From Neoechinorhynchus agilis (taxonomy: Eukaryota; Animalia; Acanthocephala): 64,000 nucleotides of DNA. Below the pieces are notes generated by a model. It had not been told where the DNA came from. It saw only the letters and a program-made list of their open reading frames with translations, and ran no database searches. The translations under genes were made by a program, and so were the position numbers. Each line of letters starts with the position of its first letter. Position 1 is the first letter of the stretch. Below, one piece after another: positions 3,541-64,000 of this stretch. The stretch spans positions 3,967,489 to 4,031,488 of the forward strand of contig CM121342.1 in the NCBI GenBank assembly GCA_051530055.1. The letters are read 5' to 3'.

Positions 3541-5030
3541 CATGAGAAGATTAAGGAAGCCGCTAGGGAACTTTTTTTAAGCAAAAAATACTCAAAATTT
3601 CCAAAAATGGACAAAAATCTTTAAAGATTTGTTTTTCTAAAATATAAGAAATAAATTATTCTGTCGTTAATACGAAAAAATCAATATTCATGAGAAGACT
3701 AAGGAAGAGGCAAAGAATTCTTTTTAAGGAAAAAAGACACAATATTTCAAATAAGGACAAAGATCTTTATAGATTTGCTTTTCTTAAATATAAGAAATAA
3801 ATTATTCTGTTGTTAATACGAAAAAATCAATATTCATGAGAAGACTAAGGAAGAGGCAAAGGAATTTTTTTAAGCAAAAAATACACAAAATTTCCAAAAA
3901 AGGACAAAAATCTTTATAGGTCTGTTTTTCTAAAATATACGAAATAAATTATTCTGTTGTTAATACGAAAAAATCAATATTCATGAGAGGACTAAGGAAG
4001 AGGCAAAGAATTCTTTTTAAGGAAAAAAGACAAAATTCCCAAAAAAGGAGAAAGATCTTTATAGGTCTGTTTTTCTAAAATATAAGAAATAAATTATTCT
4101 GTTGTTAATACGAAAAAATCAATATTCATGAGAAGATAAGGAAGGGCAGAATTTTTTAAGAAAAAATACAAAATTTCCAAAAAGGACAAAAATCTTTATA
4201 GGTCTGTTTTTCTAAAATATAAGAAATAAATTATTCTGTTGTTAATACGAAAAAATCAATATTCATGAGAGGACTAAGGAAGAGGCAAAGAATTCTTTTA
4301 AGAAAAAGACAAAATTCCCAAAAAAGGAGAAAGATCTTTATAGGTCTGTTTTTCTAAAATATAAGAAATAAATTATTCTGTTGTTAATACGAAAAAATCA
4401 ATATTCATGAGAAGATTAAGGAAGAGGCAAAGAATTTTTTTAAGAAAAATACACAAAATTTCCAAAAAAGGACAAAATCTTTATAGGTCTGTTTTTCTAA
4501 AATATAAGAAATAAATTATTCTGTTGTTAATACGAAAAAATCAATATTCATGAGAGGACTAAGGAAGAGGCAAAGAATTCTTTTTAAGGAAAAAAGACAA
4601 AATTTTCAAAAAAGGAGAAAGATCTTTATAGGTCTGTTTTTCTAAAATATAAGAAATAAATAATTCTGTTGTTAATACGAAAAAATATTCACGAGAAGAT
4701 TAAGGAAGAGGCAAAGGAATTTTTTTAAGGAAAAAAGACACAATATTTCAAACAAGGACAAAAATCTTTAAAGATTTGTTTTTCTAAAATATTCATGAGA
4801 AAATTAAGGAAGAGGCTAGGGAACTTTTTTTTAAGGAAAAAGACCCCAAATTTCCAAATAAGGACAAAAATCTTTATAGATTTGCTTTTCTTAAATATAA
4901 GAAATAAATTATTCTGTTGTTAATACGAAAAAATATTCACGAGAAGATTAAGGAAGAGGCAAAGGAATTTTTTTAGGGAAAAAAGACACAATATTTCAAA
5001 TAAGGACAGAGATCTTTAGAAGTTTGCTTC
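3541..5030. repeat. AT-rich tandem array, ~146-bp unit, ~10 copies
   Basis: The motif catgag(a)agactaaggaagaggcaaag recurs at 3541, 3689, 3835, 3982, 4127, 4264 and onward. Confidence 0.95.
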
Positions 5031-5069
5031 GAAAATATTGAGCAAAATATTTTGTCGCAATGGCGAAAA

Positions 5070-5300
5070 AATATAAATAGAAAGACTAATTAAGTCATGA
5101 AAAACTTTTTAAAACAAATCCGACAAAATATTTTTGCAAGGCCGAAGATCTTTAGAAGTCTGCTTAGAAAATTTCCAATGCGAAGTATAATTTGTGGGTT
5201 TAGAAGACTAATTAAGTCATGAAAAACTTTTTAAAACAAATCCGACAAAATATTTTTTGCAAGGCCGAAGATCTTTAGAAGTCTGCTTAGAAAATTTCCT
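5070..5300. repeat. Two-copy tandem duplication of ~120 bp
   Basis: agaaagactaattaagtcatgaaaaac...aatgcgaagtataatttg is present twice. Confidence 0.9.
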
Positions 5301-6154
5301 AATGCGAAGTATAATTTGCAATAATTGTGCATTGACGAATAAGAATTCAAGAAAATAAAATGAGAATAAAGTGCAAAGGGGATCCCAGTAAATATCACGC
5401 GTATAAATTACATTTGGAATAAAAATTTAATTCACGCGATAATTGTGTTAGGGACGTATTTTTTGAGAAGAAAATCCCAAATGACTCGTTATTTAAAAAC
5501 GAAGCGAGAAGAGAAATCTCCAAAATGTCGATTTGTGAATCGTAAACACATCTCGCCTTAGATATACCCATCAAACGGTTGGATTGAATTTTATTTTCGT
5601 GTAACGCTCGAAAACATTTTACGTAAGCGAGTATTTATCTCTTTCCGACAACAAAAATGACTTTCAAGTTCACCTTCGCATTTTAGTGGAGATTTTAAAT
5701 ACGAACGAACTTTACTGGTGTTCTTCCTGCCATTTCCGTGGAAAAATAATCGAGAAAATTACACGGTAAAAAACCTTTCAAATATTCAATAAAACAGATT
5801 TTATCCGGGAGTCGGGCAAGCCGGCCAAAACTGTTTCATAGAGAAAGATATGAATTTCGGAGTGTTTTTCGGGACTTGTGAGAAGGGTTTTTAATCGTTG
5901 ACTTGGTGTAATCGCCGTGAAGAGAACACGAGTTCTTGGTGTGACGAATTTCGAGTCGTTTTTATGTTGTTGTTGACGAGGACGTCCAGAAAAAACCGTG
6001 TCGAGAAGCTTCGGTGGGTTTTTCACCTTTTTTGTGTAAACAACAACAAAATCACTTTAAAATGTTGTCGGGTTTAAACCCCTTTACGAATTGAAAATTT
6101 AGAATTAAAAATAAAGTTTTTTGGAAGCAAATGTTTCGGTGTTTTATTAGTTTA

Positions 6155-6858
6155 AAGAACTTTAGAAAGAAAATTCCACTTAAACCAGAAAAAGAAGCGG
6201 ATTTTAAATATCTTATCAACAATTTCGGTCGAAATTAAAACGTTGTCGATATTCCCTTTGAGATTTTCCAACTGGATATTTTCTACCTTTAATCATTTTA
6301 AAGAACTTTGGAAAGAAAATTCCACTTAAACCAGAAAAAGAAGCGGATTTTAAATATCTTATCAACAATTTCGGTCGAAATTAAAACGTTGTCGATATTC
6401 CCTTTTAGATTTTCCAACTGGATATTTTCTACCTTTAATCATTTTAAAGAACTTTAGAAAGAAAATTCCACTTAAACCAGAAAAAGAAGCGGATTTTAAA
6501 TATCTTATCAACAATTTCGGTCGAAATTAAAACGTTGTCGATATTCCCTTTGAGATTTTCCAACTGGATATTTTCTACCTTTAATCATTTTAAAGAACTT
6601 TGGAAAGAAAATTCCACTTAAACCAGAAAAAGAAGCGGATTTTAAATATCTTATCAACAATTTCGGTCGAAATTAAAACGTTGTCGATATCCCCTTTGAG
6701 ATTTTCCAACTGGATATTTTCTACCTTTAATCATTTTAAAGAACTTTGGAAAGAAAATTCCACTTAAACCAGAAAAAGAAGCGGATTTTAAATATCTTAT
6801 CAACAATTTCGGTCGAAATTAAAACGTTGTCGATATCCCCTTTGAGATTTTCCAACTC
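6155..6858. repeat. Tandem array, 146-bp unit, ~4.8 near-identical copies
   Basis: aagaacttt(a/g)gaaagaaaattccac at 6155, 6301, 6447 and onward. Confidence 0.95.
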
Positions 6859-6860
6859 GC

Positions 6861-9440
6861 TTCAATTTCTCACAAATCGATCAAAATATCGTTTTATAAA
6901 GTGATGAAGTGAATTCAAAGAAAATTGCGAAAATCAATACTTTTAAAAAGTGCAAAAAATCGATAAATTTCAAAGTTTTGGGTTGCAAGTTTACGCGATT
7001 GTTCTATTAAAGTTTGAAGAATTTTAAATAATTCGTGATGCTAAAACACAAAAAATCGCTTTTTTGTTCGTTTAGAAACGAATCTAGTTTTTTTCTCTTC
7101 AATTTCTCACAAACCGATCAAAATATCGTTTTATAAAGTGATGAAGTGAATTCAAAGAAAATTGCGAAAATCAATACTTTTAAAAAGTGCAAAAAATCGA
7201 TAAATTTCAAAGTTTTGGGTTGCAAGTTTACGCGATTGTTCTATTAAAGTTTGAAGAATTTTAAATAATTCGTGATGCTAAAACACAAAAAATCGCTTTT
7301 TTTGTTCGTTTAGAAACGAATCTAGTTTTTTTCTCTTCAATTTCTCACAAACCGATCAAAATATCGTTTTATAAAGTGATGAAGTGAATTCAAAGAAAAT
7401 TGCGAAAATCAATACTTTTAAAAAGTGCAAAAAATCGATAAATTTCAAAGTTTTGGGTTGCAAGTTTACGCGATTGTTCTATTAAAGTTTGAAGAATTTT
7501 AAATAATTCGTGATGCTAAAACACAAAAAATCGCTTTTTTTGTTCGTTTAGAAACGAATCTAGTTTTTTTCTCTTCAATTTCTCACAAACCGATCAAAAT
7601 ATCGTTTTATAAAGTGATGAAGTGAATTCAAAGAAAATTGCGAAAATCAATACTTTTAAAAAGTGCAAAAAATCGATATATTTCAAAGTTTTGGGTTGCA
7701 AGTTTACGCGATTGTTCTATTAAAGTTTGAAGAATTTTAAATAATTCGTGATGCTAAAACACAAAAAATCGCTTTTTTTGTTCGTTTAGAAACGAATCTA
7801 GTTTTTTTCTCTTCAATTTCTCACAAACCGATCAAAATATCGTTTTATAAAGTGATGAAGTGAATTCAAAGAAAATTGCGAAAATCAATACTTTTAAAAA
7901 GTGCAAAAAATCGATATATTTCAAAGTTTTGGGTTGCAAGTTTACGCGATTGTTCTATTAAAGTTTGAAGAATTTTAAATAATTCGTGATGCTAAAACAC
8001 AAAAAATCGCTTTTTTTGTTCGTTTAGAAACGAATCTAGTTTTTTCTCTTCAATTTCTCACAAACCGATCAAAATATCGTTTTATAAAGTGATGAAGTGA
8101 ATTCAAAGAAAATTGCGAAAATCAATACTTTTAAAAAGTGCAAAAAATCGATAAATTTCAAAGTTTTGGGTTGCAAGTTTACGCGATTGTTCTATTAAAG
8201 TTTGAAGAATTTTAAATAATTCGTGATGCTAAAACACAAAAAATCGCTTTTTTTGTTCGTTTAGAAACGAATCTAGTTTTTTTCTCTTCAATTTCTCACA
8301 AACCGATCAAAATATCGTTTTATAAAGTGATGAAGTGAATTCAAAGAAAATTGCGAAAATCAATACTTTTAAAAAGTGCAAAAAATCGATAAATTTCAAA
8401 GTTTTGGGTTGCAAGTTTACGCGATTGTTCTATTAAAGTTTGAAGAATTTTAAATAATTCGTGATGCTAAAACACAAAAAATCGCTTTTTTTGTTCGTTT
8501 AGAAACGAATCTAGTTTTTTCTCTTCAATTTCTCACAAACCGATCAAAATATCGTTTTATAAAGTGATGAAGTGAATTCAAAGAAAATTGCGAAAATCAA
8601 TACTTTTAAAAAGTGCAAAAAATCGATAAATTTCAAAGTTTTGGGTTGCAAGTTTACGCGATTGTTCTATTAAAGTTTGAAGAATTTTAAATAATTCGTG
8701 ATGCTAAAACACAAAAAATCGCTTTTTTGTTCGTTTAGAAACGAATCTAGTTTTTTTCTCTTCAATTTCTCACAAACCGATCAAAATATCGTTTTATAAA
8801 GTGATGAAGTGAATTCAAAGAAAATTGCGAAAATCAATACTTTTAAAAAGTGCAAAAAATCGATAAATTTCAAAGTTTTGGGTTGCAAGTTTACGCGATT
8901 GTTCTATTAAAGTTTGAAGAATTTTAAATAATTCGTGATGCTAAAACACAAAAAATCGCTTTTTTTGTTCGTTTAGAAACGAATCTAGTTTTTTTCTCTT
9001 CAATTTCTCACAAACCGATCAAAATATCGTTTTATAAAGTGATGAAGTGAATTCAAAGAAAATTGCGAAAATCAATACTTTTAAAAAGTGCAAAAAATCG
9101 ATAAATTTCAAAGTTTTGGGTTGCAAGTTTACGCGATTGTTCTATTAAAGTTTGAAGAATTTTAAATAATTCGTGATGCTAAAACACAAAAAATCGCTTT
9201 TTTTGTTCGTTTAGAAACGAATCTAGTTTTTTTCTCTTCAATTTCTCACAAACCGATCAAAATATCGTTTTATAAAGTGATGAAGTGAATTCAAAGAAAA
9301 TTGCGAAAATCAATACTTTTAAAAAGTGCAAAAAATCGATAAATTTCAAAGTTTTGGGTTGCAAGTTTACGCGATTGTTCTATTAAAGTTTGAAGAATTT
9401 TAAATAATTCGTGATGCTAAAACACAAAAAATCGCTTTAT
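6861..9440. repeat. Satellite-like array, ~238-bp unit, ~11 near-identical copies
   Basis: ttcaatttctcacaaaccgatc at 6861, 7098, 7336 and onward; copies differ almost only in T-run length. Confidence 0.97.
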
Positions 9441-12400
9441 TAGTTCGTTTTTATCATACAATGAAAACCTAATAAGCGAGGCGCATCGGCTATTTAAGTG
9501 TTAAACGCTTTTTAAAAATAACAAAAAATGCTTTGGCGTGAATGAAAAACAACGTGTCTTATTTTTCATTGCTTCCAGGTTGTTTCCGGAAATTTCATGC
9601 TTAAAAATGAAGTGTTGCCCGATAATCTTTATTGTTCTTGACGTAAAGTTTCAGCGAAATATTCAGTTGTTTATTTTATTGAGAATTGCATTTATGTTAT
9701 TGTTTGTTTTATGGCGGGATAAAATTGAATAGCTGAAAACAATCGGATTTAACCGAATGTCCCTCAATTTTTTGTGGACATAAAACAAACATCAGAATAA
9801 TTCAATCTTCAAACAGTTGGTCGCTTGTCAAACCCCGACAGGGATCGTTAAAGAATTTCATACTGGATTGCAGTGTTAGACAGTTTCAATTAGCGATGTT
9901 TGATTCAGAAATAGATTTATCTTCTTTTCTTCAGTCAATTGTTTCGCAAGTTTTTCACTTCAACGTCCGAAGGACTTTCTAATGATTGAAGGCTATAAAA
10001 AACTTTGCCAAAAAATCGTACGAAGAAACCATGAGTTCACAGAACAGCTTTAAAAATCACTCTTTAATTATTCAAAACTTAAAAACTAACTGGATAAAAT
10101 TGTATGCAATTTTACATTTTCTCAATCGTTGTCATTTTCTTTTATGAATCATTTCGCATCCGTATCTTTCATACAAACGAACTTCATTATAGACATGCCT
10201 TTATTTGTTTTCATCAACAATGATATGCCGGCATACAAGTGCCAAATTTCTCTAGGGATTTTATCCCATGGGACGACTACGAGAAGCCGTAACTGTACTT
10301 GCTTCTTCTTTACTTATACAATGCGCCATTCTAGCAATATTTATCCAAATTAACGCAACAGCAGCAGTCAAAAGAGCTGAATTCATTGCTTAGAGGAAAA
10401 GGCTTGTTACAATAGAATTTCTATCTAGCATCAGAAATGGGTTTTTTAACTAATTTAGCAACCCAATCGACTTTAAAGAGAGTTGGCTCTTTTTATTATA
10501 GACGCATTTTCTTTTGAACACGTTCAAGAGAAAATTCTATCACGTTTCCTTTGAAAGGGAATTTGGATTACCATTAACCAATTTTTGGACTTTTGAACTA
10601 AAAAAAGATCGTTGGAATCTATCGACAAGTCTTGAAAAAAGTAGTGTTCTCCTAATTGGATCTCAAGAAGCAAATCGCTTTCTCGTAGTTGGCTAAATGG
10701 GAGTTGTTGCCATTTAGAGAGAAACTATGCAACATCGATTCCGTGCCTATGGAACCTTTTGCAACATTATCTTCTTTTGTAATAGATTTCTGCGAGCAAC
10801 AGAAAGTTTTTCCTGCAATATTGCAAATACCGCCTAGTCTGAAAAGCGACCAATTTGACCCTTTAACACTAGAGGCCCTAAAGAGTCCACGTTTACAAAT
10901 CGTGAATATAAACCGATATTTTTTGACGAATAAATGGAGGAAACTTAATTTTAATTTGGCGCTTATACCACTGGGCCCCAATTATTTGCCTAGCTTTGGC
11001 CCTATTACGCCCTCAACGCCCAGTTGAAGCCTAGGTCTTATTTTTCAAATTAAAATTAAGACACGGGCATGGAAAATTAAAGAGCGATTCAGGCCATTAG
11101 TTACAAAACTGTTTGAAGATTGAACTATTCTGATGTTTTTTATGGCGTAAAAATTAAAGGAAATTAAAACAGATATTTCGGATCGGATTTAATCAATTCC
11201 TTTAATTTTTAAGCCATAAAAAGCTTTATTGGTGTGAATTTGGTCATGCACGAAATAATTAGTTTTAGAAAACAGAATCCAATACGAGAACTTCAGTGTT
11301 TTTTAAAGAGAGATTGGAAAATGGCAAAAAGGAAAAAATCACGATGAACATTTTGATCGCATTATCTTAAAGATCAACTTGATGATACCGTCGTGGCAAA
11401 TGTTTGATGAAGTTCTTAGACATGTCAAAGAACAAAACAACTGAGAATCTTGTTTGTCCGGGTAGTTTTATTAGACGACTAATAAAAAATTATCAAAGCT
11501 AAATTTTTAATCGAAGGCTAGTGGGTTTTTGTAGGTTCAAATCTAACGGATTTGCCATGTCATATTTAAACAAATTATTTTTGAACCAACCAAATTCCGT
11601 CATTCGAAAAATGTGTTGAATTTCTTTTATCTTGTCTAATTTCCACCCCTTTTCAAATTGAGTGAAATTTTTAATAATAGTAAATTTTCTAAACTCTATC
11701 GTTAAAAATAATCCCTTATTTTTCTTACTTTCATTTTTTCGCCGTGATTCTCTTCTGTGTCGTTCTGATCCGGATAAAATCGGCGTGTTCCATTGTTTTT
11801 TGACAGTGCTCTAAACTACAAAAAAAGAACCCCTAATTTTGATCACCGAATCTTCGATTTCGTTTCTAAGAGTTCCTTATTCAAGTCTCAAACTCACTGC
11901 CTAAAAAAAATAATTGCAAAAACCTTTATTTATCCATTCATGGCCAGAATTTAGAGTAGAACGTTTTTATGCGGGAAATAATTAGGACATGGACATCATT
12001 CGGATACGAGATTTTCTTGGATAAACCCAATTTGATGTGTTTTTTAAATTTCGGTGTTATTCTTCGTGGGTTTTTTACACTGTCGTTCTGTCGAGACACT
12101 CGAGTGCCGTTCAGTGTCGCGGCGAATGTCCTTTTACAAGCGATTGTCGAAGTAACTGAAACGAATCCGAGGTCCGCAAGACCAGGACGGCAGCTGAGTG
12201 ATCCAGAAAGGCGGTGGCTATTCCAAAAATGAAAAAATCTTCCATATTTTTGAAATTATTGTTCACGTCTCCGACGAGGTTCTCAGAACGTCTTTTTAAT
12301 CGAAAAAGAAATCATTTGCCGCGGCTGCACATCTTCATGGGGTTTTTACACTGTAATTCTGATCCGGATAAAATTGATGTGTTCCATTTCCTTGAGTTTT

Positions 12401-12621
12401 CTTTTTCGATGAATAATTATGGCTCAGATTGTTTTAATCAGTTTGGAGATTCAAAAACGTCTCGTGTTGTTCACAAAGAAATGAGTTTGACGTAACAAAT
12501 TTCTAGTTGAGAGATGTCAACAACAATTAGGTAAGGTTTTTCTACTAGAAAATAGCTAAGATCATCGTAAAAAAAGCAATCTACGATGATAAAATATTAG
12601 TTGAAATCGAAGAATGTGGTT

Positions 12622-15225
12622 CTTCTTTCGAAATAAAGTAGAATGTCGTTTATGAGGGTCCTAGATTTTAGTTTGATGTTAACATCGATTTTACCTCTTG
12701 GACAACCCAACGATTTCGGTCAGGGAAGTGTTCAATGTAAATGAGTTTGTACAAATCCCTCTGGATCCTTAGATTTTGAACCCTTTGACCACCTCGACAC
12801 TTTCTACGGAATGTACAAATCCCTAAGCTGCCGTCTTGATTTATTTGATTCCGGGTTTTGTATAACTAAATACCCTCGAATCGTCTGAGTTTCTTGGACA
12901 ATCGTTTGACCAGGGCAGAGTGTTTCGACGCCAAAGGGAACGAAATAATTGCGATTCTCAACAACGGCCATTGTTGATCCAAGAGTCGAGGTTCTTCTTT
13001 CGAAATAAAGTAGAACGTCGTTTATGAGGGTCACAGATTTTAGTTTGATGTTAACATCGATTTTACCTCTTGGACAACCCAACGATTTCGGTCAGGGAAG
13101 TGTTCAATGTAAATGAGTTTGTACAAATCCCTCTGGATCCTTAGATTTTGAACCCTTTGACCACCTCGACACTTTCTACGGAATGTACAAATCCCTAAGC
13201 TGCCGTCTTGATTTATTTGATTCCGGGTTTTGTATAACTAAATACCCTCGAATCGTCTGAGTTTCTTGGACAATCGTTTGACCAGGGCAGAGTGTTTCGA
13301 CGCCAAAGGGAACGAAATAATTGCGATTCTCAACAACGGCCATTGTTGATCCAAGAGTCGAGGTTCTTCTTTCGAAATAAAGTAGAACGTCGTTTATGAG
13401 GGTCACAGATTTTAGTTTGATGTTAACATCAATTTTACCTCTTGGACAACCCAACGATTTCGGTCAGGGAAGTGTTCAATGTAAATGAGTTTGTACAAAT
13501 CCCTCTGGATCCTTAGATTTTGAACCCTTTGACCACCTCGACACTTTCTACGAAATGTACAACCACTAAGCTGCTGTCTTGATTTATATGATTCTCGGGT
13601 TTTGGTATGTTCAAATACCCTCGAATATCGTCTGAGTTCCTTGGACAATCGTTTGACCAGGGCAGAATGTTTCGACGCCAAAGAGAACGAAATAATTGCG
13701 ATTCTCAACAGCGGCCATTACATCCAAGAGTCGAGGTTCTTCTTTCGAAATAAAGTAGAATGTCGTTTATGAGGGTCCTAGGATTTTAGTTTGATGTTAA
13801 CATCAATTTTACCTTGCACAACCCAACGATTTCGGTCAGGGAAGTGTTCAATGTAAATGAGTTTGTACAAATCCCTCTGGATCCTTAGATTTTGAACCCT
13901 TTGACCACCTCGACACTTTCTACGGAATGTACAAATCCCTAAGCTGCCGTCTTGATTTATATGGATTCCCGGGTTTTGTATAACCAAATACCCTCGAATC
14001 GTCTGAGTTTCTTGGACAATCGTTTGACCAGGGCAGAGTGTTTCGACGCCAAAGGGAACGAAATAATTGCGATTCTCAACAACGGCCATTGTTGATCCAA
14101 GAGTCGAGGTTCTTCTTTCGAAATAAAGTAGAACGTCGTTTATGAGGGTCACAGATTTTAGTTTGATGTTAACATCAATTTTACCTCTTGCACAACCCAA
14201 CGATTTCGGTCAGGGAAGTGTTCAATGTAAATGAGTTTGTACAAATCCCTCTGGATCCTTAGATTTTGAACCCTTTGACCACCTCGACACTTTCTACGGA
14301 ATGTACAAATCCCTAAGCTGCCGTCTTGATTTATATGATTCTCGGGTTTTGTATAACTAAATACCCTCGAATCGTCAGAGTTCCTTGGACAATCGTTTGA
14401 CCAGGGCAGAGTGTTTCGACGCCAAAGAGAACGAAATAATTGCGATTCTCAACAACGGCCATTGTTGATCCAAGAGTCGAGGTTCTTCTTTCGAAATAAA
14501 GTAGAATGTCGTTTATGAGGGTCATAGATTTTAGTTTGATGTTAACATCGATTTTACCTCTTGGACAACCCTACGATTTCGGTCAGGGAAGTGTTCAATG
14601 TAAATGAGTTTGTACAAATCCCTCTGGATCCTTAGATTTTGAACCCTTTGACCACCTCGACACTTTCTACGAAATGTACAAATCCCTAAGTTGCCGTCTT
14701 GATTTATTTGATTCCGGGTTTTGTATAACCAAATACCCTCGAATCGTCTGAGTTTCTTGGACAATCGTTTGACCAGGGCAGAGTGTTTCGACGCCAAAGG
14801 GAACGAAATAATTGCGATTCTCAACAACGGCCATTGTTGATCCAAGAGTCGAGGTTCTTCTTTCGAAATAAAGTAGAACGTCGTTTATGAGGGTCCCAGA
14901 TTTTAGTTTGATGTTAACATCGATTTTACCTCTTGGACAACCCAACGATTTCGGTCAGGGAAGTGTTCAATGTAAATGAGTTTGTACAAATCCCTCTGGA
15001 TCCTTAGATTTTGAACCCGTTGACCACCTCGAAACTTTCTACGGAATGTACAAATCCCTAAGCTGCCGTCTTGATTTATTTGATTCCGGGTTTTGTATAA
15101 CTAAATACCCTCGAATCGTCTGAGTTTCTTGGACAATCGTTTGACCAGGGCAGAGTGTTTCGACGCCAAAGGGAACGAAATAATTGCGATTCTCAACAAC
15201 GGCCATTGTTGATCCAAGAGTCGAA
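12622..15225 (-). repeat. Tandem array, 372-bp unit, ~7 copies, probably derived from the 3' end of a CRE-like non-LTR retrotransposon
   Basis: Identical ORFs 372 bp apart (12804 and 13176). The minus strand reads NYFVPFGVETL...(frameshift)LVKRLSKKL, like the REL-region motif F.P..VETLG seen in the element at 57.4 kb (YIFIPIAVETLG). Confidence 0.85.
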
Positions 15226-43620: not shown

Positions 43621-43713
43621 ACAAACAACGATGAGAATTCTGAATCACTAGAGCCGCGCTTAAGTTGAGCGACGAAGGTGTGACTTTTTTGTGAGCTTGG
43701 TACTCTCAATCAA

Positions 43714-50389: not shown

Positions 50390-51095
50390 CGGACGCATCC
50401 TCACCCGAACAAACCGTCCCCGACTGGATAGTTTCAACCCGAATAGACATCCCTCCGACCAGATATTACCACCAGAACGGACTTCCAACAATCGAACGGA
50501 CACATCCTCACCCGAACAAACCGTCCCCGACTGGATAGTTCCAACCCGAATAGGCATCCCTCAGACCAGATATTACCTCCCGAACGGACATCCCTCGACT
50601 GTATATTCCCATATTAACGGATTAGGACCCAAAGGTACATGGTCCTCTTGACCTTTTGTATTTTCAACCACCAACCTTCCTAACCTGATTGGATATTTCC
50701 CCGCCCGACTGGACCTGTTATAAACGCCAAAATCAACTGCCACATTCATTAAAAAAAATCAGAACTCGAGTGTTCATTAGGACCCAAAGGAAAACATGTT
50801 ATTATAACATGCGAATGGGAAATCAGTCGACAATTTACCAACTGAACAAAATGCGATTGAGTAAACTGATTTTCGTCGACAAAGCCGTAAAATTCCGAAA
50901 TATCGGTCGATAATTAATTTGTTTCAACTGCTAATTCGGTTGGAAAATCAGTCGACATCTAACCAACTGAACAAAATGCGATTGAGTAAACTGATTTTCG
51001 TCGACAAAACAGTAAAATTCCGAAATATTCGGTCGATAATTAATTTGTTTCAGCCGCTAATTCGGTTGGGAAATCAGTCGACAATTGACCAACTG
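50390..51095. repeat. Two small two-copy tandem duplications (~115 bp at 50390-50600; ~125 bp at 50815-51095)
   Basis: catcctcacccgaacaaaccgtccccgactggatag occurs twice; aaatcagtcgaca...gcgattgagtaaactgattttcgtcgac occurs twice, with a diverged copy near 50100. Confidence 0.85.
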
Positions 51096-54070: not shown

Positions 54071-54272
54071 TTAATCTAAAAGTCGATCGGATTCTAGCCA
54101 ACAAGCCCGAAATTCAAACACGCCCATTGTAAATGTTGCGTATCAGTTAAAAATCCATTGAACGCGTTGTTTAAAGTACCGTAGGACGGCAATTAGCCGG
54201 GCGCATTAAAAAAAGCTCATTCCATTTAAAAAAAGAATTTCAACATCTTGTATCAATCTTCATAATCTTCGA

Positions 54273-55046
54273 ATGAACCATTCATACCGGAAACGAAAAC
54301 AACTAATCGAAATGGTAAAGCTTCACGGGAACGACATTTACCGCCGTACGGATGCGGTAATGGTTCTCGTTCATTTCGTATTGTCCACAATGGGCTTCAA
54401 AGCCACCGATGAAAACGGAAATCATATTAAGAAATTGCCAAAATACGCCTGGCCGATCAACGGAAGCGAACGTGGCACAATGTACGCGATTCGGTATAAA
54501 TATTTCGATCAAAACTATGACATCCAAGCAGTTCCTCTACTTCTGACACACGATATGTGGATCCATCCTGATAGCGACCTGGTGATTTATATGATTAGAG
54601 CATCTGATGATTATTGCCAAGCTCTCTACTTAAAAACTGACGACTATGTAACAGAAAATCTACACGACATCAGTAGACTAATTTGTGCATCTGAGCTAAG
54701 CCTTTTTGAGATTTGCTTTTTCTTCTACGATTGCCTATTGCGTCCAGCTTTGGATCTCGAAACTGGCGAACCTGTACGTCAACATTCTTCAATTCTGGAT
54801 GATTCGATGTTTTCCCTTGATGTGATTACTGAACATTCATTGGACGAGTTTCCTCGATTGCGATCGCCCGACAGACGAACCGTTCGCCGATTGAAACTCT
54901 TTGAACATTTGGATTTTATTTCGTACGTGGAATTAATTGAACTATTGAACGAAGAAGGCGCAGTTGTGTTCCAAGCAAATCAACATTCCTTTTTAAATTA
55001 CGTTTTAAAAAAAATAGGGAATTCAGCACACCAAAAGGATTGCTAA
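54273..55046 (+). CDS. PI31/Fbxo7 (FP)-domain-like protein, paralogue B
   Basis: TDAVMVLVHFVLSTMGF...LPKYAWP...MYAIRY; shares a C-terminal (E/N)GA.VF motif with 44112. Confidence 0.62.
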   Translation: MNHSYRKRKQLIEMVKLHGNDIYRRTDAVMVLVHFVLSTMGFKATDENGNHIKKLPKYAWPINGSERGTMYAIRYKYFDQNYDIQAVPLLLTHDMWIHPDSDLVIYMIRASDDYCQALYLKTDDYVTENLHDISRLICASELSLFEICFFFYDCLLRPALDLETGEPVRQHSSILDDSMFSLDVITEHSLDEFPRLRSPDRRTVRRLKLFEHLDFISYVELIELLNEEGAVVFQANQHSFLNYVLKKIGNSAHQKDC

Positions 55047-56600: not shown

Positions 56601-57244
56601 ATCCTATCAGCATTGAAGGTTGAAAATAAAATTGGCATTTTATTGGTAGACCGCTGTTCTTCACAATCCTTGAAATTTTGTCATTAGAGCTACGAAGACC
56701 AATAAATGCAATTTTAAGAATTTTATGCCAGAATAGAACTACGCGACTTTAGTGGAATGAAAGACCGTTACTATCACTTAATAAAATAGAATTTTTCAGA
56801 ATTCAGAGAAATAAAAATTAAAAACGTAGTTTATTCAAAAAAATCATTGGAATAAAATATTTTAAACCTCAGTAACAATTTTTACGTTAAAATCAATAGC
56901 ATCTATAATCGCCGAGGATTCTAAAAAATCCACATCAGTAATATCCGTCATATTTGAGGATCTAATCAATCATCAAGCGAAAATCTTTCAGGGTGACAGT
57001 GATGTGTTAATCCCGGATAGGAAATGTTTTATTGAAGATATTACGCGAGAAGTCTCGGATAATCGGTCATCCAAAACATTTTGTCTGAAGATTGAATTGT
57101 TCATGTTTTTTTAATTTTTGTGATTTTCTCAGTTCTGCTCCGTGAAACATTTTAAATAATATACAAATTTGCTAATTTTTAATTCAATAAAATTACCAGG
57201 TTCTTTGGTATCTTAATTATTTGTTTAATTTGTTGTCTTCAAAT

Positions 57245-58765
57245 GTTATGTTTGTTCGGCAGCTTCCTTGATGGCCGCGGTATTGCCGCGTGGGATCGCC
57301 GCGCTGATTCGCCGCAGCAGGAAGCTGATGGATCGCATATCGCCGGTGGCATGTTTTAGCATCCCTACCAGTCGGGAAAAAGGAAATAATCGGCTTCTTT
57401 TCCGAGACATCCCAGTGTTTCAACCGCAATCGGGATGAAAATATATTGATGCCCATCGAGCGATTCCTCGCTGAAGCTGGGCATCCCGTAAGTGGGATGT
57501 TGCGAGCGTGTTGGGGCAGGTAAAATCCCAAACGAGTATTTTCCCGGAGCACCATGGAAGGGCTCCATCGGGGCGTTTACCGTCGTTCCGGGAGAGTCCG
57601 ACTGGTTCGAGTCGAGCTGGAAAAACGGCCGTTGAGAGGGCTTTCTTTGAGTGGCGAGCAGTTGAACGCTTGTAGTCAAGGCCGTGAGTTCCCGTTCACT
57701 GTCTCACCGCACCGACACGTATTTGAGCCTGAGAATTCGATGCCCAAACGAAGTCCCGCAGCTACGGTGGTGGCCTGGTCATCCAGGCCAACAGCCGTGA
57801 TCGGGAAAGCCTTCAAGAAGTCGCTGGAGTGTGGAGCTGAGACTGCCAGGAGACGAGCTCTATCGTTGGGAGATGAGCATGAGTTGAGAAGCTGCTGATA
57901 ATATGCAGTGTGGAGCAAGGCAGTGCAACGTTTTTGGGAGTTTGTTTCCGTTGGAACGGCATGCCCAAACACTGATGTCCATGGAAGGTGCGTTTCAATC
58001 AGTTCAGGCCGTGGATGTGACTCGTGTCGAGTGTGTGGTGGGATGATTCTCAGCACCAGGTCTGAAGAGACCGAGATCGACGACGAAAAGGCAGGAATTG
58101 CTACTTCGGTGGCACTCTGGATGCCAAGACCGCCGAATCGAATGGGAAGGATCGCCTGTTTCCATGCTGTGTCGGACAGTCGTAGGTCAAGGACTTCTGA
58201 CAGGGTTGATCGAACGCAGTTGTCGAAATCCCTGGTGAGCACTGACTTGAAGCATGGAGAAGTCCTCAGAAGGTACGCAATCTTCGGTAGCGACAGACAT
58301 CGTGATAATATGAACAGAGCGTCGTGTCGAGCGATGTGCAAGAGCCTGGAGGCAGTGAGCCGCAATTGATCGATGGCTTTTGAAAGGAACGTTTCCAGGT
58401 TAGACAGGTTACCGATTGGAGACCCGAGAATGTCAGCTGAGTTGATTGCAGTTGTCTTTGCTCCGGGTAGTATGATGAGCAGTCTCGATGCATCCTCTTG
58501 GTCGTCCGAAATGATTTCGCATTTGTCCGTTCTCAGGAATAGTCCGATATCGGCACCCATTTCGGAGATGTTTTTGATGTCGCGAATGAGCTGGTCGATC
58601 TCCCCTCCAATGCAACAGTCGTCGAGGTACCAGATCGACAAATCTGACGAAGAGCTGTGGGCAAGATGATTGATCGTCAATGCGAACAGCAGAGGACCTA
58701 GAGGATCAACTTGTTGAACACCCTCTGCTGATTCGACCTGGGACTCGCCAAACAGCAGCATGCTG
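57245..58765 (-). mobile_element. 5'-truncated CRE-clade non-LTR retrotransposon (RT, zinc knuckle, REL endonuclease)
   Basis: SAEGVQQVDPLGPLLF, WYLDD, LPIRFGGLG, CRCGE, KRPDG, FIPIAVETLG; RT frame open for 361 aa, downstream frameshifts. Confidence 0.92.
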
Positions 58766-58832
58766 GACTAGTCGGCAAAAGATATCGAATTCCATCTTCA
58801 GCAAAACTTGTATTGATTTCTTTCGGTAAAGG

Positions 58833-59680
58833 GAGTTTGAGCGCTAAAAGCTCTTTTTTCTGCGCTGGCTATTCTTTAGTTTCTTTTTGGAGGGGAAAAT
58901 CGGAAAATGGTTGAAGTTCGAACGTGTCCATGGCTCGGTATTTGACTTTTTTCTAAGGCGATGGATTTGTTTATTCCGTCCTCTAAATTCGGGTTTTTCT
59001 CGTGGAGTTTGAGCGCTAAAAGCTCTTTTTTCTGCGCTGGCTATTCTTTAGTTTCTTTTTGGAGGGGAAAATCGGAAAATGGTTGAAGTTCGAACGTGTC
59101 CATGGCTCGGTATTTGACTTTTTTCTAAAACGATGGACTCGTTTATTCCGTCGTATGAGTTCCCGGTTTTTTCCCGTAGAGTTTGAGCGCTAAAAGCTCT
59201 TTTTTCTGCGCTGGCTATTCTTTAGTTTCTTTTTGGAGGGGAAAATCGGAAAATGGTTGAAGTTCGAACGTGTCCATGGCTCGGTATTTGACTTTTTTCT
59301 AAGGCGATGGATTTGTTTATTCCGTCCTCTAAATTCCGGGTTTTTCTCGTGGAGTTTGAGCGCTAAAAGCTCTTTTTTCTGCGCTGGCTATTCTTTAGTT
59401 TCTTTTTGGAGGGGAAAATCGGAAAATGGTTGAAGTTCGAACGTGTCCATGGCTCGGTATTTGACTTTTTTCTAAAACGATGGACTCGTTTATTCCGTCG
59501 TATGAGTTCCCGGTTTTTCCCGTAGAGTTTGAGCGCTAAAAGCTCTTTTTTCTGCGCTGGCTATTCTTTAGTTTCTTTTTGGAGGGGAAAATCGGAAAAT
59601 GGTTGAAGTTCGAACGTGTCCATGGCTCGGTATTTGACTTTTTTCTAAAACGATGGATTCGTTTATTCCGTCTTTAATCG
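58833..59680. repeat. ~173-bp tandem array (~4.9 copies, alternating A/B variants) ending just upstream of DDB1
   Basis: gagtttgagcgctaaaagctc at 58833, 59005, 59179, 59352 and 59525. Confidence 0.93.
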
Positions 59681-59709: not shown

Positions 59710-62700
59710 ATGACTAACTATTTTTCTGTTTCAACAACGTCTCCGACATCTTCAGTCTCGCATGCTGCGTACATCGAAATCCCGGTATATTCCGAGCAGC
59801 AACAACGTCCTTACCCGGCACTGGTCGTCGGATCGTGCACCGATATCAATATTTACCTGATTGAAAATGGAAATCGATTGATATTGGGCGGTAATTTCGC
59901 CCTTCAAGGATCAATATGCGTCATGAATGTTTTCACATACCACAAAAATCCTTATGTATTTTTAGTCTTACGGAATCTCGAAGCGTATTTCCTAGCTCTG
60001 AAGATTAAAGACAGTCCTCCGCTATCGGTAGTGATCCGACCGATATCCCGAAGCACAATCACAAACGCCCTTGGACACAGCGATGATATCCATTGTCCAT
60101 CCCGTGTAAGTCCGGACGGAAACCTGATTGTGATGAGATTGTTCAACAATTGCCTAACCTGTATATCGGTAAAATACAGTATAGAAAGTCGATGCAGCGC
60201 TGTACAGGACGATGGCTTATTGATCATTGAACAATACACCATATTCGACGGTAACCGCCTAAAGGATTTTCAGTTTATTTCACCACAAAACGGACGACCA
60301 CGGATGATCTGTGCTCATGATGAAGGAATCAGTTTCTCAAAACTAAAGGAAACTAACCAAGAAATCATCCTGGACACAGAAGGTCTCACGCATACTGTAT
60401 TAGCGACTCTCGTCGATCTTATTGAAATTTCCGTTAAGCAACGTATGGCGAATTATATCGTCGAACACAAGTTCCCTTATTCAATCTTCAGTCACATTCT
60501 AGTACCTGCAGAACAACTTACTAAGACCACGATAAAGTACGTCGTTGTTGGCCCAAACTGCGTTGTCCTAATGAACGAAGGACAATATTCAATTTATAGA
60601 TTCCCAGAAAAAGCCGCTGTTTTATGCGCTTGTCTTCTCGAAAACGAGGAGCAAACTTCTACTTTGATCGTGGACGAATTTGGACGACTTTTGAAGGTTT
60701 GTTTAGAACACGCATCTCGGCATGCAAAGGATAAATTGACACCAGTTTAACTCCAAGTTTTTGTAGGTTTTTACAGTTGTCCCAACGAACGAAGGACTCT
60801 ATTCATTTTTTATAGATTCCCCGAAAAATCCGCTGTTTTATGCGCTTGTCTTCTCGACAACTAAAAAGTAAACTTCTACTTTTGATCGTGGACGAATTTG
60901 GACGACTTGTGAAGGTTTGTTTAGAACACGCATCTCGCCATGCAAAGGATAAATTGACACCAGTTTAACTCCAAGTTTTTGTAGGTTTTTACAGTTGTCC
61001 CAACGAACGAAGGACTCTATTCATTTTTTATAGATTCCCCGAAAAATCCGCTGTTTTATGCGCTTGTCTTCTCGAAAACGAGAAGTAAACTTCTACTTTT
61101 GATCGTGGACGAATTTGGACGACTTGTGAAGGTTTGTTTAGAACACGCATCTCGGCATGCAAAGGATAAATTGACACCAGTTTAACTCCAAGTTTTTGTA
61201 GGTTTTTACAGTTGTCCCAACGAACGAAGGACGCTATTCATTTTTTATAGATTCCCCGAAAAATCCGCTGTTTTATGCGCTTGTCTTCTCGAAAACTAAG
61301 AAGTAAACTTCTACTTTTGATCGTGGACGAATTTGGACGACTTGTGAAGGTTTGTTTAGAACACGCATCTCGCCATGCAAAGGATAAATTGACACCAGTT
61401 TAACTCCAAGTTTTTGTAGGTTTTTACAGTTGTCCCAACGAACGAAGGACTCTATTCATTTTTTATAGATTCCCCGAAAAATCCGCTGTTTTATGCGCTT
61501 GTCTTCTCGAAAACGAGAAGTAAACTTCTACTTTTGATCGTGGACGAATTTGGACGACTTGTGAAGGTTTGTTTAGAACACGCATCTCGGCATGCAAAGG
61601 ATAAATTGACACCAGTTTAACTCTTAGTTTTTGTAGGTTTTTACAGTTGTCCCAACGAACGAAGGACTCTATTCATTTTTTATAGATTCCCCGAAAAATC
61701 CGCTGTTTTATGCGCTTGTCTTCTCGAAAACGAGGAGTAAACTTCTACTTTTGATCGTGGACGAATTTGGACGACTTGTGAAGGTTTGTTTAGAACACGC
61801 ATCTCGGCATGCAAAGGATAAATTGACACCAGTTTAACTCCAAGTTTTTGTAGGTTTTTACAGTTGTCCCAACGAACGAAGGACGCTATTCATTTTTTAT
61901 AGATTCCCCGAAAAATCCGCTGTTTTATGCGCTTGTCTTCTCGAAAACGAGAAGTAAACTTCTACTTTTGATCGTGGACGAATTTGGACGACTTGTGAAG
62001 GTTTGTTTAGAACACGCATCTCGGCATGCAAAGGATAAATTGACACCAGTTTAACTCCAAGTTTTTGTAGGTTTTTACAGTTGTCCCAACGAACGAAGGA
62101 CGCTATTCATTTTTTATAGATTCCCCGAAAAATCCGCTGTTTTATGCGCTTGTCTTCTCGAAAACGAGGAGCAAACTTCTACTTTGATCGTGGACGAATT
62201 TGGACGACTTGTGAAGGTTTGTTTAGAACACGCATCTCGGCATGCAAAGGATAAATTGACACCAGTTTAACTCCAAGTTTTTGTAGGTTTTTACAGTTGT
62301 CCCAACGAACGAAGGACGCTATTCATTTTTTATAGATTCCCCGAAAAATCCGCTGTTTTATGCGCTTGTCTTCTCGAAAACGAGGAGTAAACTTCTACTT
62401 TTGATCGTGGACGAATTTGGACGACTTGTGAAGGTTTGTTTAGAACACGCATCTCGGCATGCAAAGGATAAATTGACACCAGTTTAACTCCAAGTTTTTG
62501 TAGGTTTTTACAGTTGTCCCAACGAACGAAGGACGCTATTCATTTTTTATAGATTCCCCGAAAAATCCGCTGTTTTATGCGCTTGTCTTCTCGAAAACTA
62601 GAAGTAAACTTCTACTTTGATCGTGGACGAATTTGGACGACTTGTGAAGGTTTGTTTAGAACACGCATCTCGCCATGCAAAGGATAAATTGACACCAGTT

Positions 62701-64000
62701 TAACTCCAAGTTTTTGTAGGTTTTTACAGTTGTCCCAACGAACGAAGGACTCTATTCATTTTTTATAGATTCCCCGAAAAATCCGCTGTTTTATGCGCTT
62801 GTCTTCTCGAAAACGAGAAGTAAATCACTTTGATCGTGGACGAATTTGGACGACTTTTGAAGGTTTGTTTAGAACACGCATCTCGGCATGCAAAGGATAA
62901 ATTGACACCAGTTTAACTCTTAGTTTTTGTAGGTTTTTACAGTTGTCCCAACGAACGAAGGACGCTATTCATTTTTTATAGATTCCCCGAAAAATCCGCT
63001 GTTTTATGCGCTTGTCTTCTCGAAAACGAGGAGCAAACTTCTACTTTGATCGTGGACGAATTTGGACGACTTGTGAAGGTTTGTTTAGAACACGCATCTC
63101 GCCATGCAAAGGATAAATTGACACCAGTTTAACTCTTAGTTTTTGTAGGTTTTTACAGTTGTCCCAACGAACGAAGGACGCTATTCATTTTTTATAGATT
63201 CCCCGAAAAATCCGCTGTTTTATGCGCTTGTCTTCTCGAAAACGAGGAGCAAACTTCTACTTTTGATCGTGGACGAATTTGGACGACTTTTGAAGGTTTG
63301 TTTAGAACACGCATCTCGGCATGCAAAGGATAAATTGACACCAGTTTAACTCTTAGTTTTTGTAGGTTTTTACAGTTGTCCCAACGAACGAAGGACGCTA
63401 TTCATTTTTGATAGATTCCCCGAAAAATCCGCTGTTTTATGCGCTTGTCTTCTCGACAACTAAAAAGTAAACTTCTACTTTGATCGTGGATGACTTAAGA
63501 AGGGTATTTTAGACCTCGCGCATCTCTCAAATTGAGGAATTTGTATTGTAAAATTCGGATGAAATTGAATGAGATGTCCTGTTAAAGACGGCGAGCCATC
63601 TATGATGCTAATGTGCTCTGTCGGATGTGCCGTATGTATTGTACCGATCGTCGGAACCAACAACCTCTTCTTTGGCTCCACTACAGCAGATAACGTTTTA
63701 TACGAGTACAAAAGAGCTGAGAACTCATTGGTTGAATTGGATCGTTTGGTGAACTTGGGACCGATCGTTGATATGGTCTGTGTTGAGTACGGCATCCGGT
63801 CGATCTTTGTGACATGTTCTGGAGTTCACTCCGGTGGATCCATTGGATTTTCGACCTTACCATCTCATAAAGTCCACATCGATTGCGTCGCTAATGTGAA
63901 GCATGCGAAACAAATATGGCCATTTACTATTGGTGATACCCAATACGCCGTTGTATCGATAGGAAAACGTTCCCGTTTGTTGACATTTGAAGCTGATCGA
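59710..64000 (+). CDS. DDB1: Divergent DNA damage-binding protein 1, interrupted by a tandem exon array and continuing off the window
   Basis: Starts MTNYFSVSTTSPTSSV (cf. MSYNYVVTAQKPTAV); VSPDGNLIVMRLFN; LIVDEFGRLL. An open frame at 63569-64000 has NLGPIVDMVCV...FVTCSG...GSI...KQIWP. Confidence 0.85.
60560..63490 (+). repeat. ~217-bp tandem array (~13.5 copies) of a DDB1 exon segment plus the adjacent intron
   Basis: The unit contains ...NEG..YS..YRFPEK.AVLCACLLEN....LIVDEFGRL.K-coding sequence, then gtttgt...tttttgtag; donor repeats at 60697, 60915, 61132 and onward. Confidence 0.95.

Follow-up and report, generated by a model that had tools for sequence, protein, structure and literature searches.

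We analysed a 64-kb window (contig CM121342.1 of GCA_051530055.1; one haplotype of one genome, and the sole assembly with this sequence), which carries genes for LARP, HSF, NOL10, MRTO4, PI31-like and DDB1-like proteins. Between and inside these genes, Tandem Repeats Finder (TRF) called 13 head-to-tail arrays (A1 to A13; scores 323-6210) with units of 82-372 bp in 2-36 copies, together covering 20.8 kb or 32.5% of the window (Table 1); an earlier note on this DNA had counted about ten, each with a different unit. Self-BLAST agrees that the families are mutually unrelated, with the sole exception of the neighbours at 3541 (A1) and 5082 (A2), and it adds small or long-period repeats beyond the TRF set at 42774-43130, 50816-51095 and 18970-20332 (period 1028 bp). 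No second locus was found for any array family by self-BLAST within the 64-kb window, and therefore we see no evidence of spread. Terminal inverted repeats, consistent target-site duplications or a common boundary motif were not found at the arrays in the window, and a Pfam scan of the units of A5, A7, A9, A11 and A12 returned no credible match.

Table 1. Tandem arrays and CRE-like elements of the 64-kb window (x, copy number).
Feature	Position	Strand	Unit and copies	Remarks
A1	3541-4931	.	142-bp unit, 293-bp dimer	TRF; AT-rich, older
A2	5082-5318	.	122 bp x 1.9	TRF; AT-rich
A3	6151-6857	.	146 bp x 4.84	TRF; 98.9% identical
A4	6860-9450	.	238 bp x 10.9, 475-bp dimer signal	TRF; 99.3% identical
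A5	12618-15224	.	372 bp x 7.0 exactly	TRF
A6	17466-17926	+	180 bp x 2.56	TRF; within gene
Two head-to-tail 5'-truncated CRE-like 3' ends	18970-20332	-	period 1028 bp	self-BLAST; 97.6% identical
A7	21242-21957	.	357 bp x 2.0	TRF
A8	25097-28102	.	82 bp x ~36, 245-bp trimer higher-order repeat	TRF
A9	34104-37333	-	267 bp x 12.1	TRF; 99.5% identical
A10	50382-50593	.	107 bp x 2	TRF; 92% identical; downstream of MRTO4
Small array	50816-51095	.	125-bp unit x 2.2	self-BLAST; downstream of MRTO4
A11	53054-54087	.	208 bp x 4.3 young copies + one old copy	TRF; young copies 97.6% identical
CRE-like non-LTR retrotransposon, 5'-truncated	57244-58800	-		RT C-terminal half + endonuclease region
A12	58833-59672	+	173 bp x 4.86, 346-bp dimer	TRF; alternating A-B-A-B
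A13	60562-63490 (TRF), 60562-63540 as annotated	+	217 bp x 13.5	within DDB1-like gene

Identity over the arrays ranges from 77 to 99.5%, a continuum of ages. The word 'young', applied to them in the earlier note, suits most arrays (mean pairwise identity 95.5-99.5%) but not A1 (86.6%), A8 (77-92%, the oldest, upstream of the HSF gene at 22910-23974 on the minus strand) or the degraded edge copies of several others. This spread of ages suggests a long-running, probably still active process. Copy numbers lie within 0.16 of an integer in eight of eleven arrays where ~3.5 would be expected (A5, 7.00; A7, 2.0; A9, 12.1; A10, 1.98; A2, 1.94; A3, 4.84; A4, 10.9; A12, 4.86), and TRF detects higher-order periods of 142/293, 238/475, 82/245 and 217/433 bp. 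Variants are block-shared or alternating rather than random singletons, as seen in the A-B-A-B order of A12, the C158T of A9, the nested sets of A5 and the mosaic of A13. Edge copies are more diverged than the core in A13, A11, A7 and A1/A2, with sharp edges instead in A3, A4, A5, A6 and A9. Native sequence continues on at least one flank of A13 (where an ORF crosses the junction), A6, A11 and A7. In A3, A4, A6 and A12 the last copy is incomplete and the flanks are sharp, neither of them detectably related to the unit.

A1 and A2 are both older arrays. The A1 unit, whose copies map at 66-100% against the reference copy together with those of A2, grades into the related A2 unit, a link that comes from nhmmer. 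A3 would need another 23 bp to make 5 whole copies and has neither flank related to the unit, A4 likewise needs 23 bp to reach 11, and only 2 bp (CG) separate the two. A5 has blunt junctions with 0 bp of microhomology and ends ~100 bp before the first ATG (15326) in an ORF run leading into a 506-aa ORF (15555-17075); weak 8-nt direct repeats flank both A5 (GAAGAATG) and A12 (ATTGATTT). A7 is followed, after a 7-nt gap, by a degraded partial third copy (p=0.007), and ~95 bp of its unit recur inverted at 21106-21200, 41 bp to its left. The last copy of A11 is old and full-length (53890-54087; 71% identical, E 4.6e-25), and the ATG of the PI31-like gene (54273) lies 186 bp downstream of the array end. 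A 22-nt palindromic motif is found to the right of A9 and again to the right of A10, at a distance of 30-40 bp in each case. A6 lies inside a gene: judged by the ORF and consensus signals, its unit appears to begin within the final 8 nt of an exon for a C1-like zinc finger, to include a GTATTT donor and to end in TTTTTTGTACCCAG.

A9 consists of 12 whole copies with 8 bp of the unit at its left end, where the periodicity runs on into the flank (GAACCTTA), and 23-45 bp at its right end; copies 8-12 have C158T in common. By translation, the unit comprises the final 86 codons and the stop codon of a Ty3/Gypsy pol, which make up the C-terminal tail of the integrase, and phmmer with this translation gave 981 hits, the long ones carrying RVT_1, RT_RNaseH_2, Integrase_H2C2 and rve and matching at their C-terminal end. 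The Gypsy tail named in the earlier note is thereby borne out. A local transposon source for it is not, as all 152 of 152 tblastn matches of Gypsy pols in the window lie within A9, which is an orphan because no other part of a Gypsy element occurs in the window. It is also the only array whose unit showed homology to a TE, and the only TE-derived satellite recognised here. The CRE-like elements (restriction-like-endonuclease non-LTR) are of another kind. A further copy of the 3' end of the element at 57244-58800 occurs at 48384-48960 (97.6% identical), and tblastn with protein (RT) relatives of the element matched only at 57258-58788, 48396-48960 and 19317-19895. The proposed array of CRE-like tails dissolves on this evidence, since no 82-372-bp array matches; the only tandem is the pair of truncated copies 1028 bp apart, a TE double insertion outside the 82-372-bp class.

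The last two arrays belong to the DDB1-like gene. A12, between the 5'-truncated CRE-like element and the start of the gene, stops 35 bp short of the start codon of the conserved MTNYF, in agreement with its earlier description as DDB1 upstream region; an upstream in-frame ATG context is present in each unit, and the last copy is of the ancestral type. The unit of A13 likewise proved to be what had been proposed, a DDB1 exon plus intron: it begins inside a DDB1-like exon and comprises a 135-nt in-frame piece (45 codons) and a complete ~80-nt intron with both splice signals. Copy 1, with an in-frame exon end at 60562-60696 and a GT..AG intron at 60697-60776, is the functional exon copy. Its identity to the reference copy is 91.7%, whereas internal copies reach 94.5-100%, and it differs from the array consensus at ~12 sites, with some array copies retaining its variant states. 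Copies 2-13 are homogenised (97.9% identical) and broken by frameshifts and stop codons, and copy 14 is young for ~115 bp and then passes into an old, diverged exon end and intron (63491-63574; p=0.0015). The amplification has enlarged the intron to ~2.9 kb with many decoy splice sites. The 'gttgtcc' formerly taken for junction microhomology is simply the 7 bases with which the repeated segment opens; because the intron at the older right-hand copy precedes ACGGCG, at most 1 nt of microhomology can be inferred. Weak but specific similarity to DDB1 beta-propellers points to a DDB1-like host for both arrays: the exon after A13 matches only DDB1 chains in the PDB (residues 309-414, E 0.002-0.004 for the 26 best chains), and the N-terminal ORF gives a match to PF10433 (E 7e-4) that does not reach the curated cut-off.

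These observations support a process in which arbitrary local segments were each turned into a private array, the source being in one case promoter-proximal and in others an exon-intron boundary, the coding end of a retrotransposon or AT-rich spacer. We consider it probable, with some reserve, that they are locus-specific short satellite or macro-minisatellite arrays formed by ordinary local processes. A tandem duplication of any sequence at a break or stalled fork would give two copies, with a founding junction that could be blunt, of 1 nt or of short microhomology; repeated out-of-register exchange or slippage between copies, possibly by unequal sister-chromatid exchange, gene conversion or break-induced re-copying, would then expand and homogenise the core; and edge copies would evade homogenisation and decay while small deletions trim the array ends. 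Such a process is sequence-blind, which would explain why promoter-proximal DNA, two exon-intron boundaries, the coding tail left over from a retrotransposon and AT-rich spacer are all found among the units. This standard model fits because copy numbers are near-integer, variants are nested or alternating, higher-order repeats are present, edges are diverged and four arrays run into native flanks. Some features run counter to it. The ends of A3, A4, A6 and A12 would need an extra trimming or filler event, A3 and A4 lie 2 bp apart, and the rest of the Gypsy element is absent on both sides of A9, and therefore two deletions must be assumed there. The density, with 32.5% of a genic region in at least 13 private families, is far above expectation for animal euchromatin and is left unexplained by the model; it may reflect a high rate of birth or retention in this genome.

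A mechanism given as an example in the earlier note, that short segments are excised or copied as extrachromosomal circles, amplified by rolling circle and re-inserted as concatemers at a break, seems rather unlikely to us. It would account for A3, A4, A6 and A12, which are out of phase at their ends with both flanks unlike the unit, for the Gypsy coding tail of A9 with no Gypsy nearby, and for the A3-A4 spacing, as if one break had captured two concatemers; LTR elements and satellites are reported to be common on eccDNA, and an eccDNA or rolling-circle origin has already been proposed for euchromatic satellites (PMC7403614). The signature described there, in which the truncated monomers at the two ends add up to one monomer and the flanks bear no relation to the unit, is compatible with one to three of the eleven arrays scored at their ends and is non-diagnostic in these: A5 fits (7.00 copies, blunt ends), although in-situ duplication gives the same, and A2 and A10 fit roughly. 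In A3, A4, A6, A12 and A13 the truncated monomers do not sum to a whole unit, nor are the copy numbers the integers that simple circle integration predicts. A one-step product also predicts identical copies with star-like divergence, whereas the observed sharing is nested, alternating and mosaic; native sequence runs into A13, A6, A11 and A7 from at least one side, and the 64 kb contain no donor copy of any unit at another place. Re-insertion from circles is not needed to explain the arrays, though it may have taken place. Of the earlier claim that arbitrary segments become arrays, the descriptive core is supported but the idea of an undescribed process is not, as the anatomy is what the standard model predicts.

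A lineage-specific mutator, in which a repair or replication factor was lost or changed to give a germline 'tandem duplicator' phenotype, would mean more births of 80-400-bp duplications genome-wide, possibly with filler at the first junction. The very high density and number of private families is what it would produce, and filler absorbed into the unit at founding would explain why A3, A4 and A12 each fall 23-25 bp below a whole copy number. We think it unlikely all the same: no template for the 23-25-bp segments is detectable within 150 bp on either strand, the length coincidence is not significant when the length window is freely chosen (own estimate ~0.1), and the basis is one window of one genome. 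It is very improbable that the arrays or their copy numbers are artefacts of whole-genome amplification or assembly and absent from native DNA. The organism may be small enough to have required amplification, and the most uniform arrays (A2, 100%; A4, 99.3%; A9, 99.5% identity) are poor in internal information, so that their exact copy numbers, given here as assembled, could be mis-assembled. An artefact is disfavoured because ordered variants common to subsets of copies, higher-order repeats, old degraded edge copies and a functional, in-frame A13 exon copy so different from the consensus cannot result when a single template is amplified; array ends also lack inverted chimeric junctions. The inverted part of the A7 unit, the direct repeats around A5 and A12, the palindromic motif beside A9 and A10 and partial tandems in a TE-rich block at 38.6-43.9 kb might hint at internal tandem repeats of non-autonomous transposons (Helitron/Helentron-like, MITE-like or Penelope-like partial tandems) inserted whole. 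This is extremely unlikely, given that terminal inverted repeats and consistent target-site duplications are lacking in the window, all units differ with no family recurring there, and A13 and A6 are plainly host gene sequence.

Ordinary duplication and exchange, the reading we favour, has parallels in several known systems. Tandem duplication of exons, or of exon plus intron, is known in genes, and a Rogers-type idea derives introns from tandem duplication. The in-frame 45-codon piece with complete intron in A13 and the exon end with donor site in A6 resemble it, but A13 is amplified to 13 copies and its extra copies, with their frameshifts and stop codons, are not used as exons. Minisatellites are reportedly born by slipped-strand mispairing between short non-contiguous direct repeats (Taylor and Breden 2000; Haber and Louis 1998). 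This phrase is cited in PMC3389668. The expected length, a whole multiple of the period plus short microhomology, is shown by A5 (7.00, 0 bp), A7 (2.0) and roughly by A9 (8 bp on the left, but also 23-45 bp on the right), unlike A3, A4, A6, A12 and A13; microhomology-mediated tandem duplication in situ would in addition leave native flanks on both sides. In contrast to the minisatellite model, the units here are of 82-372 bp rather than 10-60 bp, A5 lacks microhomology and most arrays end in a partial copy.

The usual sources of TE-derived satellites are LTRs, UTR tandem repeats or TIRs. A9 shares a TE origin with them, yet its unit is a coding fragment whose parent element is missing from the locus. 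The CRE-like tails at 18970-20332 resemble the substrate of the double-insertion model (PMC5932611; reviews of TE-derived satellites in PMC9659126 and PMC12628747).

Likenesses are also found in the short euchromatic arrays of Drosophila (1.688, Rsp-like; Sproul et al. 2020, PMC7403614) and Tribolium (bioRxiv 10.1101/2023.04.24.538079), which are likewise short, placed in gene-rich DNA and bounded by truncated terminal monomers; unequal exchange, movement of higher-order repeats and short junction microhomologies also belong to that picture, and eccDNA is discussed as a vehicle. There, one or a few families occupy many loci, often inside the arrays of another satellite, whereas no second locus is seen here. 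In the satellitome model, satellite DNA is born from any tandem duplication and grown by unequal crossover in cycles of amplification and degeneration (Camacho et al. 2022, PMC8822648), and the continuum of array ages fits such cycles. The arbitrary source, the stages of 2-36 copies, the young cores (97-99.5%) beside degenerating arrays (77-90%) and the higher-order repeats all agree with it. The model was drawn from abundant multi-locus families in large grasshopper genomes, while here each family is restricted to a single locus that does not exceed 3.2 kb, and arrays take up a third of a gene-dense region. The arrays look like ordinary satellite birth and turnover at unusually high density rather than the product of a novel mechanism, and the unusual feature, within this window, is the density of private families.

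Thirteen tandem arrays were found in the window by TRF (A1 to A13, numbered from left to right), and self-BLAST added three more that are small or of long period; the two sets together amount to 20.8 kb, or 32.5% of the window. The array families are mutually dissimilar except for the neighbors A1 and A2, as expected from the earlier note's description of many unrelated arrays, and self-BLAST found no second locus for any family within the window. The same note called the arrays young, which holds for most of them and fails for A1 and A8 (see the table). A3 and A4, both young and unrelated to each other, adjoin at 6857-6860 with only CG between them.

Arrays, genes, transposable-element (TE) fragments and other features in the window. 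Identity is the mean pairwise value among full copies, except for A8 (from TRF); copy numbers were derived from the periodic extents.
Feature	Position	Strand	Unit (bp)	Copies	Identity (%)
A1	3541-5318, with A2		142		86.6
A2	3541-5318, with A1		122	1.94	
A3	6151-6857		146	4.84	98.9
A4	6860-9450		238	10.9	99.3
A5	12618-15224		372	7.00, blunt junctions	96.9
A6	17466-17926		180	2.56	
A7	21242-21957		357	2.0	
A8	25097-28102		82/245		77-92 (TRF)
A9	34104-37333		267	12, plus 8 bp left and 23-45 bp right	99.5
A10	50382-50593		107	1.98	92.4
A11	53054-54087		208	4.3, plus old copy	97.6
A12	58833-59672		173	4.86	95.5
A13	60562-63540		217	13.5	97.9
A13 copy 1, exon part	60562-60696				
A13 copy 1, intron	60697-60776				
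A7 inverted segment	21106-21200 vs 21495-21587 and 21852-21944				
22-nt motif	37362-37383; 50625-50646				
LARP-type La-domain gene	716-2503	minus			
LARP-type gene, TRF matches	1458-1498; 1784-1825				
LARP-type gene, intron	2225-2268				
Gene with 506-aa ORF, then C1-like exon	15.3-18.9 kb				
HSF	22910-23974	minus			
NOL10	30349-33220	minus			
CTLH-domain gene	beside A9				
PI31-like paralogues (two, diverged)	44112-44810 and 54273-55046				
Na/K-ATPase beta subunit gene	in window				
MRTO4	49371-50042				
DDB1-like gene, very divergent	59707 to window end				
TE fragments	18.97-20.33 kb; 38.6-43.9 kb; 48.4-49.0 kb; 55.5-58.8 kb				
Mutually inverted TE fragments	38.6-40.1 kb and 55.5-56.3 kb				
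RT fragment, KVHK...RPI motif	40591-41151				
Partial tandem repeats of its block	41774-42090 vs 43585-43886; 42774-43130				
Matches of relatives of 361-aa RT fragment	57258-58788; 48396-48960; 19317-19895				
CRE-like head-to-tail pair	18970-20332				
Related CRE-like element; second copy of its tail	57244-58800; 48384-48960				
Public gene call at MRTO4	48683-50042 (L002 17964-19323)				

The DDB1-like gene carries two of the arrays. The conserved MTNYF start lies 35 bp past the end of A12, and five copies of a segment ending just upstream of the start codon stand before the gene; in A12 two copy types alternate (A-B-A-B) and the last copy is ancestral at all diagnostic sites. The periodic region of A13 begins within the long DDB1-like ORF. 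Its copy 1 is made up of a 135-nt in-frame exon part ending in GAAG and a complete intron of ~80 nt (GTTTGT...TTTTTACAG), whereas copies 2-13 contain indels and stop codons. One intron of the gene holds 13 decoy exon-intron units. Taking the second copy as reference, copies 2-13 are 94.5-100% identical to it, and copy 1 is 91.7% identical, with ~12 private differences that all lie in the exon part. Some internal copies retain states of the exon copy, making the array a mosaic. The last copy is young for ~115 nt and then continues as an old, diverged exon end and intron (exon end ...IVDDLRR, intron gtattttag...; p=0.0015), which leads into the next DDB1-like exon; in the PDB, that exon matches DDB1 chains only, at residues 309-414. 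The founding duplication of A13 would have been an in-frame duplication of 45 exon codons. The 'gttgtcc' that had been read as microhomology at the DDB1 junction is simply the 7 bases with which the repeat opens. If the old right-hand copy, in which the intron precedes ACGGCG, stands for the state before duplication, no more than 1 nt of microhomology can be deduced.

The unit of A9, read on the minus strand, translates to ...GPYKALDRNEKFFMIDLGGKPENVSIDRLKQAYIDPSSPVILAQPPKGGRPRKKRKNLLEGLCSDH followed by a stop codon. The peptide gave 981 matches when all 1.84 billion representatives were scanned with HMMER; the long matches are polyproteins with RVT_1, RT_RNaseH_2, Integrase_H2C2 and rve domains aligned at their extreme C-terminus, corroborating the identification of this unit as a Gypsy tail; a word-sharing search with the peptide returned no candidate. 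When the Gypsy polyproteins were searched back on the window, all 152 HSPs fell inside A9 and none elsewhere, and A9 is the only Gypsy sequence in the 64 kb. It lies directly between the NOL10 start and the CTLH-domain ORF, and 8 bp of its periodicity (GAACCTTA) continue into the left flank.

Several other units also lie at gene boundaries. The next ATG lies ~100 bp downstream of the end of A5 and 186 bp downstream of that of A11. The C1-like exon ends at a putative donor site; A6 begins 8 nt ahead of this donor and carries it in each unit. Every unit of A13 and A6 has consensus donor and acceptor signals (GTTTGT...TTTTTACAG and GTATTT...TTTTTTGTACCCAG, respectively), and therefore 3-13 decoy splice-site pairs lie in the host introns. 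Six-frame translations of the A5, A7, A11 and A12 units gave no credible Pfam match, a DUF4630 match of A5 being inflated by a doubled query. At A7, ~95 bp of the unit recur inverted beyond the left end of the array, at a distance of 41 bp and with 88.5% identity, which could be the footprint of a foldback or template switch, or a TE terminus. The earlier note had also listed a CRE-like tail among the array units; relatives of the 361-aa RT fragment match three places, none of which is a TRF array. The sole CRE-like tandem feature is a head-to-tail pair of 5'-truncated 3' ends of such a restriction-like-endonuclease non-LTR element, spaced by 1028 bp and with 97.6% identity, which looks like a double insertion. 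A related CRE-like element and a second copy of its tail lie elsewhere in the window. No paralogue from the same assembly appeared in the CRE-like RT search, and look-ups of the window ORFs returned matching loci only inside the window, or none.

The window is animal nuclear DNA at ~3.967-4.031 Mb of the 16.38-Mb chromosome record CM121342.1 (NCBI assembly GCA_051530055.1); its genes are compact, and it contains no Rfam families or tRNAs. The nearest relatives of NOL10 are only ~40% identical (best 42%) and come alike from molluscs, insects, echinoderms and vertebrates, which places the lineage on a long branch, for which the protein collection contains no close sequenced relative. In the LARP-type gene there are long tracts of poly-Q, poly-A and poly-P, and a clear 44-nt intron (GTGAGT...TTATTAG). 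The PI31-like paralogues lie 10 kb apart, each with a CRE-like tail a few kb downstream, and two TE fragments are mutually inverted copies with 88-89% identity; together these may represent an old segmental duplication. The RT fragment with the KVHK...RPI motif, which we take to be Penelope-like, belongs to a block that also has partial tandem repeats with periods of 1811 bp and 189 bp. In the public gene calls, NOL10 is split in two and MRTO4 is fused with an ORF from the antisense strand of the CRE-like tail into one spliced product of 318 aa. Gene callers have thus already been misled by arrays and TE fragments, and this unannotated assembly is prone to mis-annotation induced by them.

The arrays are real; the exact copy numbers given for the most uniform ones are provisional. 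Differences between copies do not behave as random singletons in the column patterns of A5, A9, A12 and A13, and TRF detected dimer and trimer periods. These shared variants and higher-order periods, the decay of copies at array edges and the departure of a functional exon copy from the array consensus jointly rule out the amplification of a single template and make an artifact very improbable. Transport by TEs is more improbable still: no TIRs or TSDs were found at the arrays when the 300-bp left and right flanks were compared for inverted and direct repeats, which yielded only weak 8-13-nt matches at A5 and A12. We also rejected structure-prone units, since DNA folding does not differ from that of controls (mean z-score -1.27 for the 13 units vs -0.80 for 26 length-matched controls, Mann-Whitney p=0.13). 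A near-palindromic motif of 22 nt, GGAYCCAAAGRTACATGGKTCC, has two occurrences, one at A9 and one at A10, in each case 30-40 bp beyond the right end of the array; no recurrence is expected by chance (100 shuffles). Its similarity ends by ~30 nt, and it was discarded as a shared boundary element.

We consider that the arrays were probably made by processes acting in situ. Tandem duplication would come first, followed by unequal exchange and conversion; ends that are out of phase could result from later deletions, break-induced re-copying that halts mid-unit, or insertion of a linear concatemer. Copy numbers lie within 0.16 of an integer in eight of 11 arrays against ~3.5 expected (binomial ~0.007, with the threshold set post hoc). 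In the flank tests, A3, A4, A5, A6, A9 and A12 have sharp edges and flanks unlike the unit, and A13, A11, A7 and A2 run into degraded copies. Variant sets are nested among the A5 copies, and A9 copies 8-12 have one substitution in common. The whole or near-whole copy counts, native flanks where these are recognizable and stepwise variants are as the standard model predicts, as are the higher-order repeats, young cores with old edges and the continuum of ages. Insertion of rolling-circle concatemers from eccDNA, a route of the kind offered as an example in the earlier note, seems unlikely to us; earlier work on euchromatic satellites has considered it and provided a sequence test (PMC7403614), which gives only an ambiguous answer for these arrays. 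Slightly less likely again is a lineage-specific mutator state, perhaps with filler-bearing junctions. To reach a whole copy number, A3, A4 and A12 would each need another 23-25 bp, a shortfall that would follow if the founding junction carried filler that was absorbed into the unit, but the 23-25-bp segments have no template in 150 bp of unit plus flank on both strands. Nothing beyond the trivial self-match pointed to filler or templated insertion, and we do not regard this coincidence of lengths as significant.

The earlier description was thus mostly accurate, with exceptions such as the CRE-like unit, the 'gttgtcc' junction and the youth of all arrays. What remains of interest is quantitative: at least 13 private families make up one third of a region dense in genes, and several sit right at promoters or splice sites. 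It is an unlikely, broader proposal that this genome has a heritable and unusually high birth or retention of 80-400-bp tandem duplications, with thousands of private families forming about one third of gene-rich euchromatin and starting preferentially near promoters and at exon-intron boundaries, owing to an alteration, peculiar to the lineage, in how breaks or forks are repaired (perhaps involving filler at the founding junctions) or to circle-based amplification. For now the finding illustrates known processes and not the undescribed one suggested earlier, because the anatomy of the arrays fits duplication and unequal exchange, a standard model already extended to 'any tandem duplication' (PMC8822648), and the circle route had been discussed before. 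If the density seen here is typical genome-wide, it would show to what extent compact genes can accommodate arrays in their promoters and introns, and the genome would be a natural laboratory for the birth of satellites from unique sequence, with many independent families of differing ages whose sources and flanks are still recognizable, early stages that are seldom kept in the satellites usually studied.
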